Sequence record: NC_061441.1
Strand: one strand, 5' to 3'
Length of the DNA stretch: 64,000 bases
This document shows, in pieces, positions 12,267 through 38,862 of the stretch. Each line of letters opens with the position of its first letter. The first letter of the stretch is position 1. The position numbers were made by a program, and so were the translations under genes. A model generated the notes under the pieces. The model had not been told where the DNA came from, did not search any database, and saw nothing but the letters and a program-made list of their open reading frames with translations.

Positions 12267-13037
12267 ATGAGCAACGTTGATAAAACAATGCCACAAGGTC
12301 GCTGGGAATTTAACGAACCAGTTGCTGCTGTCTTCGATAACATGTTGCAAAACTCCATTCCTTCGTATGACCGTATGCGTGACCTGACCTATCGTCTTGG
12401 TCGCCAGTTCGTAACTCCAGGTACGGCCATCGTTGATTTGGGCGCATCGCTTGGTCGCGCTATCGAACCATTCTGCGCTGAGTTCGGCGAGTACCATTAT
12501 ATTCATGCTGCTGACCGCCCTGAGCCAGATCGTGAAATCGGCAATCACTACTGCTGCTACGAAGTCGCACCGGCAATGCTTGAGCGTCTTCGTCAAAACG
12601 AAGTGCTGGTCAACGCCAAAGCAAAAATCAGTAGTGATTCGCTGGTTGAAGTCGATACTTTCCGCTTCGACGAGCAGGTTGAGTGCTCCCTGATTCTGAG
12701 TGTGCTGACTCTCCAGTTCACTCCTATCGAACACCGCCAACACATTCTGGAGAAAGTGTACGACTCTCTGGAGAAAGGCGGTGCTTTCATTCTGGTTGAG
12801 AAAGTGTTGGGTGACGACAACTTCCTTGACCGTTTGCTGGTAGACACCTACTACGGCATGAAGGGCGATAACGGTTACTCGCAAGAATCTATTGCGACTA
12901 AGCGCAAAGCTCTCGAAGGCGTACTGGTGCCTGTGAAAGCTGCATGGAACGAAGAACTGCTGCGTAAAGCAGGCTTCAACCGTGTGGAGTGTTTCTACCG
13001 CGACCTGAACTTTGCTGGATGGATCGCAGTCAAATAA
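12267..13037 (+). CDS. cmoA: carboxy-S-adenosyl-L-methionine synthase (CmoA-like)
   Basis: WEFNEPVAAVFDNMLQNSIPSY, VDLGASLG, LTLQF, EK, NGYS..SIATKRKALE (Arg equivalent to E. coli CmoA R199), AGF..NF; collinear with CmoA over its full length. Confidence 0.9.
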   Translation: MSNVDKTMPQGRWEFNEPVAAVFDNMLQNSIPSYDRMRDLTYRLGRQFVTPGTAIVDLGASLGRAIEPFCAEFGEYHYIHAADRPEPDREIGNHYCCYEVAPAMLERLRQNEVLVNAKAKISSDSLVEVDTFRFDEQVECSLILSVLTLQFTPIEHRQHILEKVYDSLEKGGAFILVEKVLGDDNFLDRLLVDTYYGMKGDNGYSQESIATKRKALEGVLVPVKAAWNEELLRKAGFNRVECFYRDLNFAGWIAVK

Positions 13038-13048
13038 GGTAAAACGAA

Positions 13049-14095
13049 ATGAGCGTAAGTGGTGATATTTATAACATCCCTCAACCGTTCGCCATATATT
13101 GTGGCAACTGTGAAACTCGTGCTCAGGCAAAAGTTGCCTCAGGCACAATCGAATGGGCGTCAGAGAAAGTCTGCTGCGTTGTTGCCGACGATAACGGCCT
13201 GTTCCCTGATGTGCCTCACGTCAACATCGCAAGCGTCCATGCCACAGATGCACGTACTCTGGTAATTGGCTGTGCACCGTTCGGCGGTAAGATTGACGAG
13301 CACATGGACCGCACTATTCGCAGTGCTATCTATCGTGGTCTGAACGTTGCTGCCGCGATGCACAATCGTCTGGCAGATAATCCTGAATACGTTGCGCTGG
13401 CCGAACAGTATAACGTCAAGCTGTATGACTTCCGTCATCGTCCTGACGCGTACCCTCTCGGTACTGGTGAGAAGCGCAGAGGCATTCGTCTGCTGACTGT
13501 AGGTACCGATAGCTCTTGCGGTAAGAAGTTCACGACGCTGACGCTGCACCGCATCCTGAAAGAGATTCACGAAGACACCGTGTTCTGTTCAACTGGCCAG
13601 ACTGGTTTCCTGATCAGCAACTGTGGTATCAACAACGATACGCTGGTGGCTGATTTCCTTGCTGGCGCTGCTGAGTCTTTATCTCCCGATGGTCCTGATG
13701 ATCGTATCTATCTGATTGAAGGCCAGGGTGCTATTACTCACCCAGCGTATACTGGTGGCAGCATGAGCCTGATTGCTGGCTCGCAGCCTGACTACTTCAT
13801 CATGTGCCATGCGTGGGGACGTAAGAATCAGCTCGGTGTTAAACGCGCACCTGACCTTGCTTTTGAACTAAAGGCCAATCTGGACGCAGCGGCCATTCAC
13901 GGTCTTACTCCTAAGTATCTAGGCATCAGTATCAACTTCTCCGAGAGTGGCCTGACCATCGAAGAACAAGACGCTGAGATGTGCGCCCTGGAGGACCTGT
14001 ACGATATTCCAGTGTTCGACCCGTCGCGTGATCGTATCGTCATCAAAGAGATGGCACATCATCTCAAGACGACTGTAATATTCAGGGGCAAGTAA
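13049..14095 (+). CDS. DUF1611 family protein (DgcN-like, P-loop C-terminal domain)
   Basis: LVIGCAPFGG, AAMHNRLADNPE, GTDSSCGKK, STGQTGFLI, DFLAGAAE, IEGQGAITHPAY. Confidence 0.85.
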   Translation: MSVSGDIYNIPQPFAIYCGNCETRAQAKVASGTIEWASEKVCCVVADDNGLFPDVPHVNIASVHATDARTLVIGCAPFGGKIDEHMDRTIRSAIYRGLNVAAAMHNRLADNPEYVALAEQYNVKLYDFRHRPDAYPLGTGEKRRGIRLLTVGTDSSCGKKFTTLTLHRILKEIHEDTVFCSTGQTGFLISNCGINNDTLVADFLAGAAESLSPDGPDDRIYLIEGQGAITHPAYTGGSMSLIAGSQPDYFIMCHAWGRKNQLGVKRAPDLAFELKANLDAAAIHGLTPKYLGISINFSESGLTIEEQDAEMCALEDLYDIPVFDPSRDRIVIKEMAHHLKTTVIFRGK

Positions 14096-14096
14096 C

Positions 14097-14966
14097 ATGG
14101 CTAAACATCCTCTTCGCAAGCTGTTTGAACAGCACGTAAAGAAAGAGGTCAAAGCCAAAGAAGTGGCCGTTCTGCTTTCGAGCGGCCTCGATGGTTTGGT
14201 TAGCGCACTCGCGGCGCACGATCTCGGCATGAAGGTACATGCCTTTACTTTTCAGATGGGCGACGACCAGAGCTTCGACAGCAAACACGCTGCAATCGTA
14301 GCCCAGAAAATGGGCTGGGAGTTCACGCTCGTTAAGGTGCCAGACTCTGATAGTGCAATCGCCAAAGGCTGGAAGACGTTGCACAAGAATTTCCGCTGCA
14401 TCAAAAAGCGTGATTACGAGTGTGCGTACCCTATGGTGTACTGCTACAAAGCGATCAAAGATGCAGGCTTGAAATACGTGCTTAGTGGTCTGGTGGCTGA
14501 CGGTTACTTCCTGTATAACCGAAACACGCACATTCAGAAAGTAAGCGGCCCGCACTCTATCGCTGAAAAGTATCACGCGTACCGCACCGAATACTTCCGA
14601 CCGTGGATCAAAAGCGGTAAGAAGTCGCTCGGCGTTGACGGCTATAACCCGAGCGGTATGCTGCAACACGAATTGCTGTGTGACCACTTCGGCCTTGTTC
14701 ACGTTAACCCGTGGATGCAGCCGAAAGTATTTGATTACTTCATCAAGTACACATGGCAAGAGTTAAATATGCCTAAGCAGAAAATGCCAATAACAACGGC
14801 TTGGGCAGATCACATCGCAGTTGTTGGACATCGTCCACATCGCGGCTATCAAACAGAAGCTGGAGTGCCTGCGCACTTCGAACGCTTACTGGATAATCCT
14901 GAGATCAACTTCAACGGCCGCAAGCGCATCATGGACGTGGCCCGCGATTGGTCAACGAGGACTTAA
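14097..14966 (+). CDS. asparagine-synthetase-like ATP-dependent amide ligase, synthetase domain only (CmoY-like candidate)
   Basis: PP-loop VAVLLSSGLDG, HAFTF, DSKHAAIVAQKMG, VLSGLVADGYF; no N-terminal Ntn glutaminase domain. Confidence 0.75.
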   Translation: MAKHPLRKLFEQHVKKEVKAKEVAVLLSSGLDGLVSALAAHDLGMKVHAFTFQMGDDQSFDSKHAAIVAQKMGWEFTLVKVPDSDSAIAKGWKTLHKNFRCIKKRDYECAYPMVYCYKAIKDAGLKYVLSGLVADGYFLYNRNTHIQKVSGPHSIAEKYHAYRTEYFRPWIKSGKKSLGVDGYNPSGMLQHELLCDHFGLVHVNPWMQPKVFDYFIKYTWQELNMPKQKMPITTAWADHIAVVGHRPHRGYQTEAGVPAHFERLLDNPEINFNGRKRIMDVARDWSTRT

Positions 14967-18020: not shown

Positions 18021-18863
18021 ATGACAGTAATCAGCCCAATCCGATATCAGGGCAATAAGCGAAGCCTTATCCCGATTATTCTTGAGCACACGCCTTCTGT
18101 GCAGGACTGCCCTCGCATGGTGGACGTGTTTGGTGGTAGTGCTACTGTTTGCGCGAACATGCCGCAGAAGTTTCGCGTCTACAATGAACTGAGTCCTCAG
18201 GTGTACGATATCGTTAAGATGTTAGTCGAACAGGACCCGAAGAAAACTCTTGGTCAGGTCAAGCGACTGGTCAAACATTGGTGCCTGACTAACAGCAACG
18301 AAGCGAACTACGATGCGTTTCGGACCGTCGTTCAGAGGAAGCGTACGGCTATACTGCATTACGTTGCACATCGCCACGCACACTCGAACATGTTGCGCTT
18401 CAATCAACAAGGTGTGTACAACGTAGGCTTTGGTGATCGTGGCCTGATTGGAAAGTTCGATGAGCTGGAGCACGAACTCACTACATTCCACAAGCACATG
18501 CAGGGCGTTCACCTGACGAACATGAAGTACGGCAAACTGCTTGGTCGCTTAGGCCACCAGCTAGACTGTAACACGTTCTGCTACTTCGACCCTCCGTATT
18601 TAGCGAGCGGTGCGATGCAGTACGGTAAGTGGACCGAGCAGAATGAACGCAACCTGCTTACGACTCTGGAGCAGTTGAATCGTCGCGGCGTTCCCTGGAT
18701 GTTGAGCAACGTTATCGAGCACCGTGAGTTCTCCAACGACCTGTTAAAGCGTTGGCTAAAGAAACATGCGACAACCGTGCTCTATCCAAACAAAAGCTAT
18801 GCGATGAACAATGGCCAGAGCGGCTCGCATAGCACGATTGAAATTCTGGCAATGAACTATTGA
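18021..18863 (+). CDS. Dam-like (D12 class) N6-adenine DNA methyltransferase
   Basis: SPIRYQGNK, DVFGGSATV, YFDPPY. Confidence 0.88.
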   Translation: MTVISPIRYQGNKRSLIPIILEHTPSVQDCPRMVDVFGGSATVCANMPQKFRVYNELSPQVYDIVKMLVEQDPKKTLGQVKRLVKHWCLTNSNEANYDAFRTVVQRKRTAILHYVAHRHAHSNMLRFNQQGVYNVGFGDRGLIGKFDELEHELTTFHKHMQGVHLTNMKYGKLLGRLGHQLDCNTFCYFDPPYLASGAMQYGKWTEQNERNLLTTLEQLNRRGVPWMLSNVIEHREFSNDLLKRWLKKHATTVLYPNKSYAMNNGQSGSHSTIEILAMNY

Positions 18864-20731: not shown

Positions 20732-21237
20732 CCGAACTACCAATGTCTGCGGAGCAGGCCGAACACATCATGGCGAGTGTGTTTACTCTGGCCGGTGCTT
20801 CTAAATCCAAGCGTCGTGCGACTGCTGCAATGCTCATTCATTTTCATGACGGCTTCCCTACTATTATCAGTAGCGGTGTCAACGGTACTATGCCAGGCGA
20901 AAGCAACGTCATGGAAACTCCTGACCTGACTCTCTCGCTCAACACTGTTATCCATGCAGAGGTGAACTGCCTCAATCGCATGGAAGAATACAGTCTGTGG
21001 GCAAACGAACAGGACATTCTGTTCTGCACTGATTCGCCGTGTCCTAACTGCTTGGCGGATCTCGAAGCCGAAGGTGTGAAGACCGTTGTGTATGCGCGTG
21101 AGTATCGCCTGACTGATCATCTGGACGCATCTTCGATTAAGATGTTCTGTCTGGATATGAAGTCCGTTGAGCACCGTATGCTTCGCGGTATCGAGCGCAT
21201 GAACGAAGTTATCGCAACAACACCAGCGTCTGAATAA
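20716..21237 (+). CDS. dCMP deaminase-like zinc deaminase
   Basis: SGVNG, HAEVN and SPCPNC motifs. Confidence 0.85.
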   Translation: MRCNLTELPMSAEQAEHIMASVFTLAGASKSKRRATAAMLIHFHDGFPTIISSGVNGTMPGESNVMETPDLTLSLNTVIHAEVNCLNRMEEYSLWANEQDILFCTDSPCPNCLADLEAEGVKTVVYAREYRLTDHLDASSIKMFCLDMKSVEHRMLRGIERMNEVIATTPASE

Positions 21238-25612: not shown

Positions 25613-25916
25613 CCTGCTGGTAAAGATGTTCGGCCAGAACAAGCCATTCATCGTCGTGCGCCGTGACGCTACCGTGGAGAACGAAAAGCGTTTCGGTGAT
25701 CGCGTTTACTTCTCTAATGGCGTTAACACCGTCACTGTGCCAAACATTCAAGGGCTTGACCTGGGTGATAAGCTCTACATTGCAGAAGACGGCGATGTGT
25801 ATGAGTGGCATCCTCACTTCGAGCGTCCTTACGAAGCAGTATCGAACAACCAGACAGAAGCTCTGGCGTTTGGTCTGCATCCCATTGTCTTCCACACCGA
25901 CACACGGAACAGCTAA
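25566..25916 (+). CDS. hypothetical protein
   Basis: ORF coupled to thyA (TAATG). Confidence 0.55.
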   Translation: MKMPTPVILLKQQTRDLLVKMFGQNKPFIVVRRDATVENEKRFGDRVYFSNGVNTVTVPNIQGLDLGDKLYIAEDGDVYEWHPHFERPYEAVSNNQTEALAFGLHPIVFHTDTRNS

Positions 25917-27013
25917 TGTCACAACCACTTGATTTACGAAACCCGAACCACTACGAACTGTACTCTCTCCATAGCGTGGACGAGCAGTATATCAACCTGT
26001 GCGATGCAATCATTGCTACTGGTACGCAAGAGTCCGATGCTGGTCGCACCGACGATACGTGGACGACTCTGATTGGCGTTGGTTTCCAGTTGCAGAACAC
26101 GCACATTGCTTTCCCTGCACTGCTGTCCGCACGTAAGAACTGGAGCGCAGCCGTCGATGAGATGTGCTGGATGGCTCGCGGTGAAACGAACATCAACACT
26201 CTCGGCTCTAAGATCTGGGACGAGTGGGCAGATGAAAGCGGTGAGTGCGGTCCAATCTATGGCGAGATGTGGCGCCGTTGGCCTGACATTAAAGCGTTCT
26301 TCGACTACACGCAGCCTATGGCGTCTTGCCCTACTGCCGATGTTATTCGTGTACGTGACGAAATCCTGCGTATGCGTCAGGACGGCTACATCGAAACGCA
26401 ACTGACTGACGGTCGCATCCTGTTTGAAGGTGAGATTGACCAGTTCGCTAACGCTCTGTATCACATTGAAAACCGTTCGCGTTCTCGCCGCATTCGTGTG
26501 CAGGGTTTCAACCCAAGCTATGTGAACATGCAGGGTCTTCCTCCGTGTCACACTGAGTTTGAGTTCAACGTAACGAAGTCCACCAAGTACGAACAGGCGC
26601 AGGCCGATGTCCGCGGTCAGACGGTAGCGCAGGACAGTCTGCATATCACTGTCACCATGCGCAGCAACGACTGCCTGCTTGGGCGTCCTTTCAACATCAT
26701 CGGTTACAGTGCGATGCACCAACTGATTGCGAAGTGGGCCGGCCTGAACGTTGGCGGCTTTACGCTGAATACGACGAACACGCACCTGTACGATCATCAC
26801 CGTGAAGCATACGCTAAACAGCGTGAGCAGTGGATGACGTTGCGTGAACGTATGCAGACAACTGGCGAGCCTGTGAAATATCCTGTGCTCGAAATCTCCG
26901 ATGATGTTATAGGTCTGACAGCCAAAGAACTGCTGGACAACGTTAACATAGACTGGTTCGAGCTGGTGGACTACAGCCCGCTGCCAGCAGTAAAAGGACG
27001 TGTGACCAAATGA
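25916..27013 (+). CDS. thyA: thymidylate synthase
   Basis: KIWDEWADE.GE.GPIYG..WR, LPPCH, MRSND...PFN, HLYD.H. Confidence 0.93.
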   Translation: MSQPLDLRNPNHYELYSLHSVDEQYINLCDAIIATGTQESDAGRTDDTWTTLIGVGFQLQNTHIAFPALLSARKNWSAAVDEMCWMARGETNINTLGSKIWDEWADESGECGPIYGEMWRRWPDIKAFFDYTQPMASCPTADVIRVRDEILRMRQDGYIETQLTDGRILFEGEIDQFANALYHIENRSRSRRIRVQGFNPSYVNMQGLPPCHTEFEFNVTKSTKYEQAQADVRGQTVAQDSLHITVTMRSNDCLLGRPFNIIGYSAMHQLIAKWAGLNVGGFTLNTTNTHLYDHHREAYAKQREQWMTLRERMQTTGEPVKYPVLEISDDVIGLTAKELLDNVNIDWFELVDYSPLPAVKGRVTK

Positions 27014-28975: not shown

Positions 28976-29674
28976 ATGGCAAAAATTGCTAAAACAAAGG
29001 AAGGGAAAAAGAAAAGCGCGATGAAGTTTGACTTGAAAACGCTCAAGACTTCACAACTGAAAGGCGCTGACTACAACCCTCGTTTCATTACAGACAGCCG
29101 CCTGAAAGCACTCGAAAGTTCTTTGGGTAGCTTCGGCGATCTGTCTGGCATCGTCTTCAACAACAGTGTCAAAAGCGGCGTATTGATCTCTGGTCACCAG
29201 CGTCTGAAATCCATCGACGGATGGAAGACTCGCATTGAGATTCAGAAAGCCGCCGACCAACACGGTACTGTAGCTCTGGGTTATATCCACGCTACGCACC
29301 CGAAGAAAGCCGAGAAGGTCATCAGCATCCCGTTGCGTATCGTTAACTGGACTGATAAGAAAGCTGAGTACGCTGCGAACATCGCGGCGAACGCCCACGG
29401 TGGTGAGTTCGATAACAAGAAACTCGCCAAGCTGGTGGAGAAGCTGGACTTGACCACCATCAAGCCTCAGTTGCTGGGTCTTGACCCACTTGAGATTCGC
29501 GGCCTTCAACAAAAGCTGAAAGGTCAGGCTGCGGTTGTAGCTCAAGAGCGTGTCGGTAAAACTACAGGCCAGATGAACGGTAGTAGCGGTGCGTTCAAAG
29601 AGTATGGTACGGACGAAGTAGGTGAGAGTCTGAACTGCACCTGCCCGCGCTGTGGATTTAAGTTCGAGGGATAA
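28976..29674 (+). CDS. ParB/sulfiredoxin-like N-terminal domain protein with C-terminal zinc ribbon
   Basis: LKGADYNPR, ISGHQRLK, ANAHGGEFD, CPRCG. Confidence 0.85.
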   Translation: MAKIAKTKEGKKKSAMKFDLKTLKTSQLKGADYNPRFITDSRLKALESSLGSFGDLSGIVFNNSVKSGVLISGHQRLKSIDGWKTRIEIQKAADQHGTVALGYIHATHPKKAEKVISIPLRIVNWTDKKAEYAANIAANAHGGEFDNKKLAKLVEKLDLTTIKPQLLGLDPLEIRGLQQKLKGQAAVVAQERVGKTTGQMNGSSGAFKEYGTDEVGESLNCTCPRCGFKFEG

Positions 29675-29675
29675 T

Positions 29676-31805
29676 ATGATCATCAAGCCGCCTACTATGA
29701 AGGAAATCAACAAGCTGGATAAACCCTGGCGTGGTATGAGTTTCTTCGCAGGTTGCGGTGGATCTTCTACCGGTCACAAGATGGCCGGTATCAACATCCT
29801 GTTGAGTAACGAGTTCGTGGATAGTGCCCGCGAGTCTTACGAAGCAAACCATCCGACTACTAAAGTGCTGCCGCATGATATTCGTCGTCTGGACCCAAGC
29901 AAGCTCATGCGTTATTGCGGCTTGGCGAAAGGCGAACTGGATTTACTTGACGGCAGTCCTCCGTGCTTCACCGAAGACACCATCATTCATACAGCAGACG
30001 GCATGAAGTTCATCTCGGACATGAATGTCGGCGATCAAGCAATGACCTCTGTTGGTCGTTACTTCCCTGTGTACGATACTATGGTTCGTCCGTACGTCGG
30101 CACGATGCACAAAATCGAAACTCTGCTGGGCGCAAACAACGCTACACCAGAGCATCCGTTCTTTGTCAGACGCAGCATTCCTACTGGCGGTTACACTGAC
30201 CCGTTCTGGTGTGATGCGAAAGACGTTCAGGAAGGTGATCTGTTAGGTAGCCCACGCACTACGCCTGACATGGGACTCGACGTGTATCAGTCGCAACTCG
30301 ATCAGCTGCCGAAGCAGATTGCAGAGTGGAGCACATTCCCTGAGTTCTGGTGGATGGTTGGACACTGGTGTGATCGCGGTTCGATTGAAACCGTGAGTGG
30401 TGTTGAAGTCGTTAGCTTTGAATCTCACTCAAGCCTCGAAAATGCAATGATTGAGCAGGCGTTTGACGCGCTGAAAATCAGCAGCCTGAACCGTATCGAC
30501 ACGATGACAGCACAACGCAAAACGTTCCGTATCGTTATGGACGCAGAGCTGGTGCAGTTCTTACGTCGATTCGTATCTCAGGGTAACAACAAGTTCTCTC
30601 GTCGTCTGCCTGCGATTGTCTTCCACCTGACAGTCGAGTTGAAGCAACAATTCATTCTCGGTTGTGCTGGTCATGACTATGTGACTGGTATGGGTACCGG
30701 CTTGGCGATCACCTCAGATAGCCGTCGCTTCCTGATTGAGTTGAACTACCTGTGCTGTTCTGCATTCAACAGACCGCTGTTCGATGGTCTGACTTGGGGC
30801 GACGTTTACTTCGGCAGCCCGATGACTCCGCGTGATCGTAACAGTGCTAAGCCTCTCATTGGCTTCCTGTTCCTGCAGGACGAGCACAACTTCTTCCACG
30901 AGTTCGATGACGCTGACCCGCATTTGTGGGTAGAAGTGATTGAGAACCTCGCGTATCAGGCAACCTGTGACGTGTATAACTTCTCCGTTGAGACGGACGA
31001 GACATACGTTGCAAACAGCATGGTCGTTCACAACTGCAAAGGCTTCTCTACTGCTGGTGTGAAGGAAGAAGGCTGGGGCAAGGAAGTTAAATACAGCGAC
31101 AACAAGTATCAGCAGGTAGATGACCTGTTCGATCAGTATTGTCGTATGCTGGAAGGCATGAAGCCGAAGGTGTTCACTGCGGAAAACGTGAGCGGCCTTG
31201 TGAAGGGCGCATCGAAAGGTTACTTCCTTGAAATCATGAAGGAGTTCGACCGAATCGGTTATTACGTCCGGGCACCGATGCTTAATGCCGCATGGCTGGG
31301 TGTGCCGCAATCGCGTGAGCGTATAATCTTCATGGGTGTACGCAAAGACGTTGCACACGCACTTGGTTACAAGACCGCTGCGACCGCTGTGCCGAATGTT
31401 GTTCCGTGTGACAGCATGGCGTTCCTTGCCGATGCTCTGCCGCACATCCTGCGCTACAAGTCCACGAAGAAAGATATCATCACCTATCTTCCTGCGATGA
31501 ACGGACCGATGCCTACGATTACTGCTGCCGATGCGATTGCATATGAGACTGCGCGTTTCTCGTCTGCGGGATTCGTCGAGGACAACAAAGGTCATCGCCG
31601 TAAACTGACTATCGACGAACTCAAAGTGATATCGGGTTTGCCCTCAGACTACAAACTGAAAGGCAAATTCGAAGAACAGTGGGAACGTCTTGGTCGTATC
31701 TGTGTGCCTGCAATGACACACGCTGCGGCTAAAGCGCTCATCGAACACGTCCTGATTCCTTACGCGAAGAAACGTAAGAAGAAGCCAGGCGATATCTTTA
31801 AGTAA
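29676..31805 (+). CDS. C5-cytosine DNA methyltransferase homolog, predicted carboxymethyltransferase (CmoX-like), intein-containing; about 352 aa after splicing
   Basis: Motif I FFAGCGG, IV GSPP-C-KGFS after splicing, VI ENVSG, VIII QSRER; motif X reads LGRICVP instead of GN(A/S)V. Confidence 0.88.
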   Translation: MIIKPPTMKEINKLDKPWRGMSFFAGCGGSSTGHKMAGINILLSNEFVDSARESYEANHPTTKVLPHDIRRLDPSKLMRYCGLAKGELDLLDGSPPCFTEDTIIHTADGMKFISDMNVGDQAMTSVGRYFPVYDTMVRPYVGTMHKIETLLGANNATPEHPFFVRRSIPTGGYTDPFWCDAKDVQEGDLLGSPRTTPDMGLDVYQSQLDQLPKQIAEWSTFPEFWWMVGHWCDRGSIETVSGVEVVSFESHSSLENAMIEQAFDALKISSLNRIDTMTAQRKTFRIVMDAELVQFLRRFVSQGNNKFSRRLPAIVFHLTVELKQQFILGCAGHDYVTGMGTGLAITSDSRRFLIELNYLCCSAFNRPLFDGLTWGDVYFGSPMTPRDRNSAKPLIGFLFLQDEHNFFHEFDDADPHLWVEVIENLAYQATCDVYNFSVETDETYVANSMVVHNCKGFSTAGVKEEGWGKEVKYSDNKYQQVDDLFDQYCRMLEGMKPKVFTAENVSGLVKGASKGYFLEIMKEFDRIGYYVRAPMLNAAWLGVPQSRERIIFMGVRKDVAHALGYKTAATAVPNVVPCDSMAFLADALPHILRYKSTKKDIITYLPAMNGPMPTITAADAIAYETARFSSAGFVEDNKGHRRKLTIDELKVISGLPSDYKLKGKFEEQWERLGRICVPAMTHAAAKALIEHVLIPYAKKRKKKPGDIFK
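29964..31034 (+). mobile_element. intein (357 aa) with degenerate LAGLIDADG region, inserted directly before the catalytic Cys
   Basis: Starts C-FTEDT, block B ATPEHPF, block F VYNFSVETDETYVAN, ends VHN followed by +1 Cys. Confidence 0.92.
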
Positions 31806-38526: not shown

Positions 38527-38862
38527 ATGGCTCTAAATCACTTGCAGTATGCCCTTGGTCTGCTGGCCAAGGCAAGCGCACAGGTATCTCAGGCAGCACT
38601 TGACTGCCAGCAGCACGGCTTCGACCACGTAGACCCTAAGAGTCTAGTGGCACTGACAGCGCGTGAGCATTTGATCAGCGGTCTGGACGACGTTGCTGCG
38701 GCTGTGTTGCTCGTTGAGCGTGAAGCTGGTCCGCATTTCGAGTTCGTGCCTGATACTCGTCGTGCGCTTAACAAGATGGACCAACTGCGTTCCCAGCTAG
38801 GCTTCGCTATTGAATCTGGCCATGCAGAAGGTTACGAAGACGAGGAGGACGAAGAAGAATGA
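38527..38862 (+). CDS. hypothetical protein
   Basis: ORF with acidic C-terminus. Confidence 0.6.
   Translation: MALNHLQYALGLLAKASAQVSQAALDCQQHGFDHVDPKSLVALTAREHLISGLDDVAAAVLLVEREAGPHFEFVPDTRRALNKMDQLRSQLGFAIESGHAEGYEDEEDEEE

Follow-up and report, generated by a model that had tools for sequence, protein, structure and literature searches.

Can the cofactor of a phage DNA cytosine methyltransferase be told from a single residue of its motif X? The question is raised by gp047, a gene labeled "hypothetical protein" in the record of Erwinia phage pEa_SNUABM_16, an Alexandravirus jumbo phage with a genome of 266.8 kb. The window, that is, the whole 64,000-nucleotide stretch of DNA that was analyzed, corresponds to bases 1–64000 of this genome (NC_061441.1, 100% identity), and the arginine codon in question lies inside gp047 (29676–31805, plus strand). 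An initial annotation, made from the letters of the window alone, had pointed to motif X at 31680–31709, where this arginine stands in place of the asparagine that canonical C5-cytosine methyltransferases hold next to S-adenosylmethionine (SAM). It proposed that a positive charge at this position determines binding of the carboxylate of carboxy-S-adenosylmethionine (Cx-SAM), and that the substitution was residue-level evidence for carboxymethyltransferase activity.

Our reading, to which we assign a probability of roughly 85%, is that gp047 encodes a predicted CmoX-type DNA cytosine-C5 carboxymethyltransferase, which is made as an intein-containing precursor. The value of the arginine as residue-level evidence for this activity is upheld by its alignment with R350 of SpCmoX, by the closeness of gp047 to SpCmoX, and by the linkage of the arginine to CmoA across the family, all of which point to carboxymethyl transfer. 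SpCmoX, from Synechococcus phage S-B43 (PDB 8YF3), is a DNA cytosine C5-carboxymethyltransferase in which R350 replaces N304 of HhaI and directly touches the carboxymethyl carboxylate of Cx-SAM (PMC12783734).

A C5-methyltransferase interrupted at its catalytic cysteine

The open reading frame of gp047 (29652/29676–31805) gives a 709-residue annotated precursor from the ATG at 29676, with an alternative start at the GTG at 29652. It is a C5-cytosine methyltransferase carrying a 357-residue intein at the catalytic cysteine, and its spliced form has 352 residues. Pfam places family PF00145 (C-5 cytosine DNA methylase, E = 1.7e-38) on the protein in two pieces, with weak intein and HINT matches between them.

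The first piece, the N-extein (29676..29963, plus strand, 96 residues), is supported by PF00145 and by BLASTP against SpCmoX. It contains motif I (FFAGCGG, 29742–29762), the NEF triplet that pairs with SpCmoX E47/F48 (29808–29816), the HDI triplet that pairs with SpCmoX D69 (29874–29882), and the GSPP half of motif IV (29952–29963). The intein follows at 29964..31034 and runs from CFTEDT to MVVHN. The C-extein (31035..31805, 256 residues plus the stop codon) begins with the +1 cysteine (31035–31037), which would become the catalytic cysteine of the restored SPPC-KGFS motif, and continues through motif VI (ENV, 31182–31190), motif VIII (QSRER, 31308–31322), a variable target-recognition region, and motif X (31680..31709); all of these features lie on the plus strand. 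Motifs I, IV, VI, and VIII, which had been described as intact, could all be located, with the qualification that motif IV becomes contiguous only once the intein is removed. By comparison of sequences, the two exteins together are a complete C5-methyltransferase, and SpCmoX is its closest characterized relative.

The database entry PHROG 36001 (profile length 715, "unknown function"), which is matched by 31035–31802, corresponds to the CmoX with its intein as found in these jumbo phages.

Position of the motif X arginine

In the gp047 frame, 31680–31709 reads TGG GAA CGT CTT GGT CGT ATC TGT GTG CCT, or WERLGRICVP, and the arginine codon CGT at 31695–31697 is read directly from the sequence as had been claimed. 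The residue is number 674 of the 709-residue precursor when counted from ATG 29676, 682 when counted from GTG 29652, and 317 of the 352-residue spliced protein.

The alignments agree on what this residue replaces. In a phmmer search of the PDB, erlGRi of gp047 pairs without gaps with kmiGNa of HaeIII and rqvGNavpP of DNMT1, and in a profile built from family members the arginine column coincides with the asparagine of the HhaI G303-N304 pair. All three methods (phmmer, profile, and BLASTP) also pair it with G349-R350 of SpCmoX, again ungapped (ERLGRICVP vs. ERVGRMVPP). An alignment to HhaI and CmoX had been suggested as one way to check the substitution; it sets the arginine on HhaI N304 and SpCmoX R350, and the claimed Asn-to-Arg swap at the canonical G-N site of motif X stands in the phmmer, BLASTP, and profile alignments alike. 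A shifted register, in which isoleucine would be the equivalent of the asparagine (GRICVP against GNAVPP), was considered and rejected, as GR falls opposite GN, ungapped, in all of the alignments.

The arginine is also well preserved among close relatives. Our orthologue set comprised six sequences from the genera Alexandravirus, Sasquatchvirus, Snuvirus, Yoloswagvirus, and Rivsvirus, all of which keep QWERLGR(I/V)CVP with an invariant arginine. The surrounding codons vary synonymously (CGT/CGC, GGT/GGC/GGG, CTT/CTC/CTG, TGT/TGC, GTG/GTA/GTT, and CCT/CCA), and by this codon-level pattern the motif is under purifying selection across the five genera.

Relation to SpCmoX and to SAM-dependent methylases

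Among solved structures, the closest to gp047 by sequence is 8YF3, SpCmoX with Cx-SAM (phmmer E = 1.1e-59, vs. 1.6e-20 for the next, HaeIII), and a search of the PDB with the family profile gives the same order (E = 8.9e-113 vs. 4.5e-44). BLASTP aligns gp047 and SpCmoX at 36% identity (E = 8e-70), and in this alignment the cofactor contacts F25, E47, F48, D69, and C98 of SpCmoX are all conserved. The precursor was modeled with AlphaFold2 from 71 homologues; the predicted local distance difference test score of the model is above 90 over both exteins and below 50 over the intein. When this model was compared with the PDB by Foldseek, 8YF3 was again the top match, with a target-normalized TM-score of 0.76 vs. 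0.51–0.55 for HhaI.

gp047 resembles SpCmoX in its C5-methyltransferase fold, its SPPC motif, the arginine in the HhaI-N304 slot, and the conserved adenine, ribose, and cytosine contacts; it is likewise of phage origin, from a genome that also carries a CmoA homologue and an asparagine-synthase-like ligase. It departs from SpCmoX in being interrupted by the 357-residue intein at the catalytic cysteine, in reading GRICVP rather than GRMVPP in motif X and PCK rather than PCS in motif IV, and in its target-recognition region, which aligns poorly. Because of this poor alignment, the GC specificity of SpCmoX cannot be assumed for gp047, and its target sequence cannot be inferred. With M.HhaI, M.HaeIII, and DNMT1, gp047 shares motifs I, IV, VI, and VIII and, by implication, the covalent mechanism in which cysteine attacks C6; these enzymes differ from it in having asparagine in motif X (GN[AS]V), usually PCQ in motif IV, and SAM as the cofactor.

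Arginine, CmoA, and the motif IV glutamine across the family

In order to place the arginine in its family, we assembled 121 sequences, made up of the 120 best homologues and the query. The motif X residue is arginine in 116 of them and asparagine in the remaining 5. On a family tree of 122 homologues, the asparagine forms are scattered and the query lies in an all-arginine clade. The five asparagine-type sequences account for four state changes on this tree, which suggests that active sites of the putative methyl and carboxymethyl types have repeatedly been switched.

The published survey lists 5,615 phage-derived CmoX candidates with SPPC and R350, often accompanied by CmoA, an AMP-forming ligase, and a ParBc protein (PMC12783734). 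We tested the association between the motif X residue and CmoA by a Fisher test on 80 loci of family members from IMG/VR, with 10 kb on each side. These loci divide into 75 with arginine, 4 with asparagine, and 1 with leucine. A CmoA homologue was present within 10 kb in 65 of the 75 arginine-type loci and in none of the 5 others (P = 1.2e-4). Three of the 10 arginine-type loci lacking a CmoA match are Erwinia-jumbo-like contigs whose CmoA lies beyond the flank. Within the CmoX family, the arginine state, and not the asparagine state, is linked to CmoA. This contrast between arginine and asparagine types supports the published determinant independently; it is absent from the published survey, where arginine was a selection criterion.

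A second change accompanies the first. The glutamine that follows the catalytic cysteine in PCQ occurs in only 2 of the 116 arginine-type homologues, 111 of which have lysine, alanine, or serine there, as do gp047 (PCK) and SpCmoX (PCS). It is kept in three of the five asparagine-type homologues and in three of the four asparagine-type IMG/VR loci. Loss of the motif IV glutamine is a change that covaries with the motif X arginine.

The intein

At the point of interruption the frame reads GSPP / CFTEDT...MVVHN / CKGFSTAG, so that the intein sits exactly between the prolines of motif IV and the catalytic cysteine; the +1 splice residue and the catalytic cysteine of the enzyme are one and the same. 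The residues of a class 1 intein are present: Cys1, block B TPEH (30144–30155), the terminal HN (31029–31034), and Cys+1. In these features (Cys1, TxxH, C-terminal His-Asn, and +1 Cys), and in its placement within the most conserved motif, the gp047 intein is like other class 1 inteins at enzyme active sites. It is unlike typical ones in the weakness of its HINT matches and in having a central domain that matches no homing-endonuclease family; for this domain (about 230 residues), no Pfam family was found up to E = 1, and the PDB yielded a single, weak match, to an intein-like domain from a bacterium.

The boundaries assigned to the intein draw on the weak Pfam matches and on homologues that lack it. 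No intein-less orthologue was found among sequenced phages, as every record in the five genera has the insert, and for this reason the junction was checked against metagenomic homologues. In the 120-homologue alignment, the splice junction is ungapped relative to intein-less homologues of about 340 residues, and two of these (P0001 and P0002, 345–353 residues) are 70–71% identical to spliced gp047 across 99–100% of its length. The insertion is rare in the family as a whole. There is no insert at the intein site in 77 of the 80 IMG/VR loci, and the 3 with an insert are all Erwinia-jumbo-like; two of the 120 metagenomic homologues carry unrelated inteins at the same site (P0005, 259 residues; P0020, 171 residues). 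Our literature search found no paper on an intein in a CmoX-type enzyme.

Cys1, TPEH, HN, and Cys+1 are invariant in the six orthologues. Their exteins are 75–95% identical and their intein cores 39–82%, with cores as low as 39–40% identical against exteins of 75–78%. Across more than 46 phage records from the five genera, the 709-codon frame, insert included, is unbroken.

Companion genes and a proposed pathway

The candidate source of Cx-SAM is encoded at 12267..13037 (plus strand) by a CmoA-like gene annotated as "tRNA methyltransferase." Its product matches the CmoA model TIGR00740 below the curated cut-off (E = 9.6e-43, 146.6 bits), its best PDB match is E. coli CmoA (4GEK, E = 1.1e-30, full length), and its identity to SpCmoA, which is experimentally active, is 30% (E = 4e-29). 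This protein is the presumed supplier of Cx-SAM. A CmoY-like gene at 14097..14966 (plus strand) encodes an ATP-dependent amide ligase with the C-terminal domain of asparagine synthase and without the glutaminase domain (PF00733, E = 3.4e-13; 33% identity to SpCmoY, E = 3e-50); a sequence search of the PDB with this protein gave no match.

Between these two genes lies a third, at 13049..14095 (plus strand), for a DUF1611/DgcN-like protein (PF07755, E = 1.9e-45; PF17396, E = 2.2e-18; PDB 7XRJ, E = 2.5e-52), whose match to the DgcN model NF041892 (E = 2.7e-83) is below the cut-off. The gene was found in none of the 80 IMG/VR CmoX loci, nor in the related phages pEa_SNUABM_2 or Y3, and a literature search on DgcN returned only unrelated work. 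The protein is a candidate for an extra step in hypermodification.

Immediately upstream of gp047, a gene at 28976..29674 (plus strand) encodes a ParB-like protein (PHROG 620, "ParB-like partition protein," E = 1e-32) with no Pfam match up to E = 5. The gp047 ATG at 29676 has GAGG upstream and starts 2 nucleotides past the stop of the ParB-like gene, and the two genes are probably translationally coupled. ParBc proteins are reported to be frequent neighbors of CmoX (PMC12783734), and in the metagenomic contigs L008, L009, and L010 the same ParB-like gene immediately precedes intein-less relatives. No CmoA was found within 10 kb of the methyltransferase in these three contigs, which is uninformative because in the Erwinia phage CmoA itself sits 17 kb away. 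The locus as a whole differs from that of SpCmoX, as cmoA and cmoY lie 15–17 kb from gp047 rather than adjacent to it, with the DUF1611 gene between them and the ParB-like gene directly upstream of gp047.

Other genes for nucleotide and DNA modification lie in the same early region (18021–18863, 20743–21237, 25916–27013, and 38527–38862, listed together). Their products are a Dam-family N6-adenine methyltransferase, a dCMP deaminase, a 365-residue thymidylate synthase that carries an insertion, and an NTP pyrophosphohydrolase.

Taken with what is known of SpCmoX, these genes suggest the following course of events. The intein would splice out by way of Cys1 and the terminal asparagine, with the +1 cysteine as acceptor, joining GSPP to CKGFS; this would restore the SPPC motif, in which the +1 cysteine would serve as the catalytic nucleophile. 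Cx-SAM would be made from SAM and prephenate by the CmoA-like enzyme of the phage, and perhaps by the host CmoA as well. The spliced enzyme would bind Cx-SAM, with the guanidinium of the arginine pairing with the carboxylate; the cysteine would attack a flipped-out cytosine at C6, with the carboxymethyl group passing to C5 to give 5-carboxymethylcytosine (5cxmC). The CmoY-like ligase may then amidate the 5cxmC carboxylate with an amine whose identity the sequence does not reveal. Phage DNA hypermodified in this way would be expected to resist restriction by the host.

The final step may not be the same in all relatives. The borders of the ligase cassette are conserved among close relatives (98% identity for CmoA and 75% for gp019), and the content between them changes. 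pEa_SNUABM_16 and AD1 carry the DUF1611/DgcN-like enzyme with the CmoY-like ligase; pEa_SNUABM_2 has a single asparagine-synthase-like ligase (L091, 2064–2927) that is 24% identical to the CmoY-like ligase of pEa_SNUABM_16; and Y3 has another ligase together with a 2-oxoglutarate/Fe(II) oxygenase (L092, 1938–3733). This swap suggests different final DNA adducts between relatives, which we regard as a lead rather than a finding. With the intein placed on the catalytic cysteine of the CmoX, the first modification step would depend on splicing. A fuller proposal, which we put forward tentatively and consider doubtful as a whole, is that Alexandravirus-type Erwinia and Dickeya jumbo phages may bear a splicing-dependent, 5cxmC-derived hypermodification that is unlike the published glycyl adduct and differs even from one phage to another that is nearly identical.

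Weighing the assignment

Several observations weigh against a CmoX-type assignment for gp047. The residues that follow the arginine differ, reading GRICVP here, GRMVPP in SpCmoX, and GRAVPP in the family majority, and because of these differences in flanking residues we infer the geometry of the arginine side chain. Engineered enzymes with an Asn-to-Lys change at this position retain activity with SAM (PMC12015181), so some formation of 5-methylcytosine (5mC) by gp047 is possible. The 146.6 bits of the CmoA-like protein fall under the curated NCBIfam cut-off of 193.3, and its gene, though in the same genome, is 17 kb from gp047 and not adjacent to it. Within the intein, the Pfam matches to Intein_splicing (E = 2.8e-6, 27.6–30.5 bits) and Hint_2 (E = 1.9e-4, 21.5–22.2 bits) are below their gathering thresholds of 35.8 and 28.4. 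Finally, a literature search for biochemical or DNA-composition data on pEa_SNUABM_16 or its relatives found none.

The likeliest alternative, although we judge it improbable, is an enzyme that uses both SAM and Cx-SAM, with the outcome set by the supply of Cx-SAM from the phage CmoA. Its models are the engineered enzymes M.MpeI N374K and M.MedI N377K. As in gp047, the asparagine of motif X is replaced in them by a positive charge, which allows Cx-SAM binding and the formation of 5cxmC (PMC12015181, PMC12783734), and both variants use SAM as well as Cx-SAM (PMC12015181). The unlikeness of the arginine-flanking residues to those of SpCmoX also favors this alternative. Unlike gp047, however, these enzymes have lysine rather than arginine, and they are laboratory mutants of CG-specific bacterial methylases with their SAM activity kept; they are only distantly related to gp047 (4DKJ, phmmer against the PDB, E = 2.4e-6). 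Wild-type SpCmoX accepts Cx-SAM and not SAM (PMC12783734), and the motif IV glutamine is replaced too (by lysine in gp047), which suggests a pocket reshaped for a larger group.

Less probable still, and in our view very unlikely, is an ordinary SAM-dependent C5-methyltransferase making 5mC, in which the arginine is tolerated and has no part in cofactor choice. It could be argued from M.MedI N377K, which still makes 5mC fully with SAM (PMC12015181), and from the label DNA-cytosine methyltransferase that several relatives carry in their records. Against this, the closest characterized relative takes only Cx-SAM, arginine and not asparagine is tightly linked to CmoA in the family, the phage keeps CmoA-like and CmoY-like genes of its own, and the arginine is invariant under purifying selection. 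A dead gene, in which splicing has been lost or the precursor does not function, leaving the arginine without a present role, is barely credible, for although the HINT and intein scores are under threshold and the intein core has no endonuclease family match and low AlphaFold2 confidence, more than 46 phage records of five genera preserve all 709 codons of the frame, the splice residues are invariant, and the exteins are far better conserved than the intein core.

With the CmoX-type carboxymethyltransferase retained as the preferred reading, the claim that a positive charge is the determinant of Cx-SAM use can be divided. Contact of SpCmoX R350 with the Cx-SAM carboxylate bears out the binding role; a positive charge permits the use of Cx-SAM and by itself may not exclude SAM. 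The claim is limited because M.MedI N377K keeps its SAM activity and because SpCmoX R350N loses all activity, being inactive with both cofactors rather than reverting to a methylase (PMC12783734). The arginine is diagnostic of, and probably necessary for, the use of Cx-SAM, but may not be sufficient for it.

Significance

gp047 is an unannotated member of the CmoX family from enterobacterial jumbo phages, which makes this a sound re-annotation and not a new kind of enzyme. The CmoX family, the role of its arginine, and its wide distribution in phages were published in December 2025 (PMC12783734), and the finding opens no new question. We saw neither Erwinia or Dickeya phages nor inteins mentioned in that paper or its supplements, and a literature search on these Erwinia and Dickeya phages turned up nothing on modification of their DNA. 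What goes beyond the published picture is the intein on the catalytic cysteine, the DUF1611 gene in the cassette, and the swap of the ligase cassette; these are leads, rather than findings, toward a final adduct that is different or variable.

The result re-annotates a "hypothetical protein" of more than 46 Erwinia amylovora and Dickeya jumbo phages as the putative first enzyme of a carboxymethylcytosine DNA-modification pathway, and the entry PHROG 36001 could be re-labeled. It also extends the range of CmoX from cyanophages to enterobacterial jumbo phages. Some of these jumbo phages are studied for the biocontrol of fire blight. The re-annotation leads to the prediction that their DNA contains 5cxmC-derived bases, and such bases would affect sensitivity to restriction, host range among laboratory strains, and behavior in nanopore or enzymatic sequencing.

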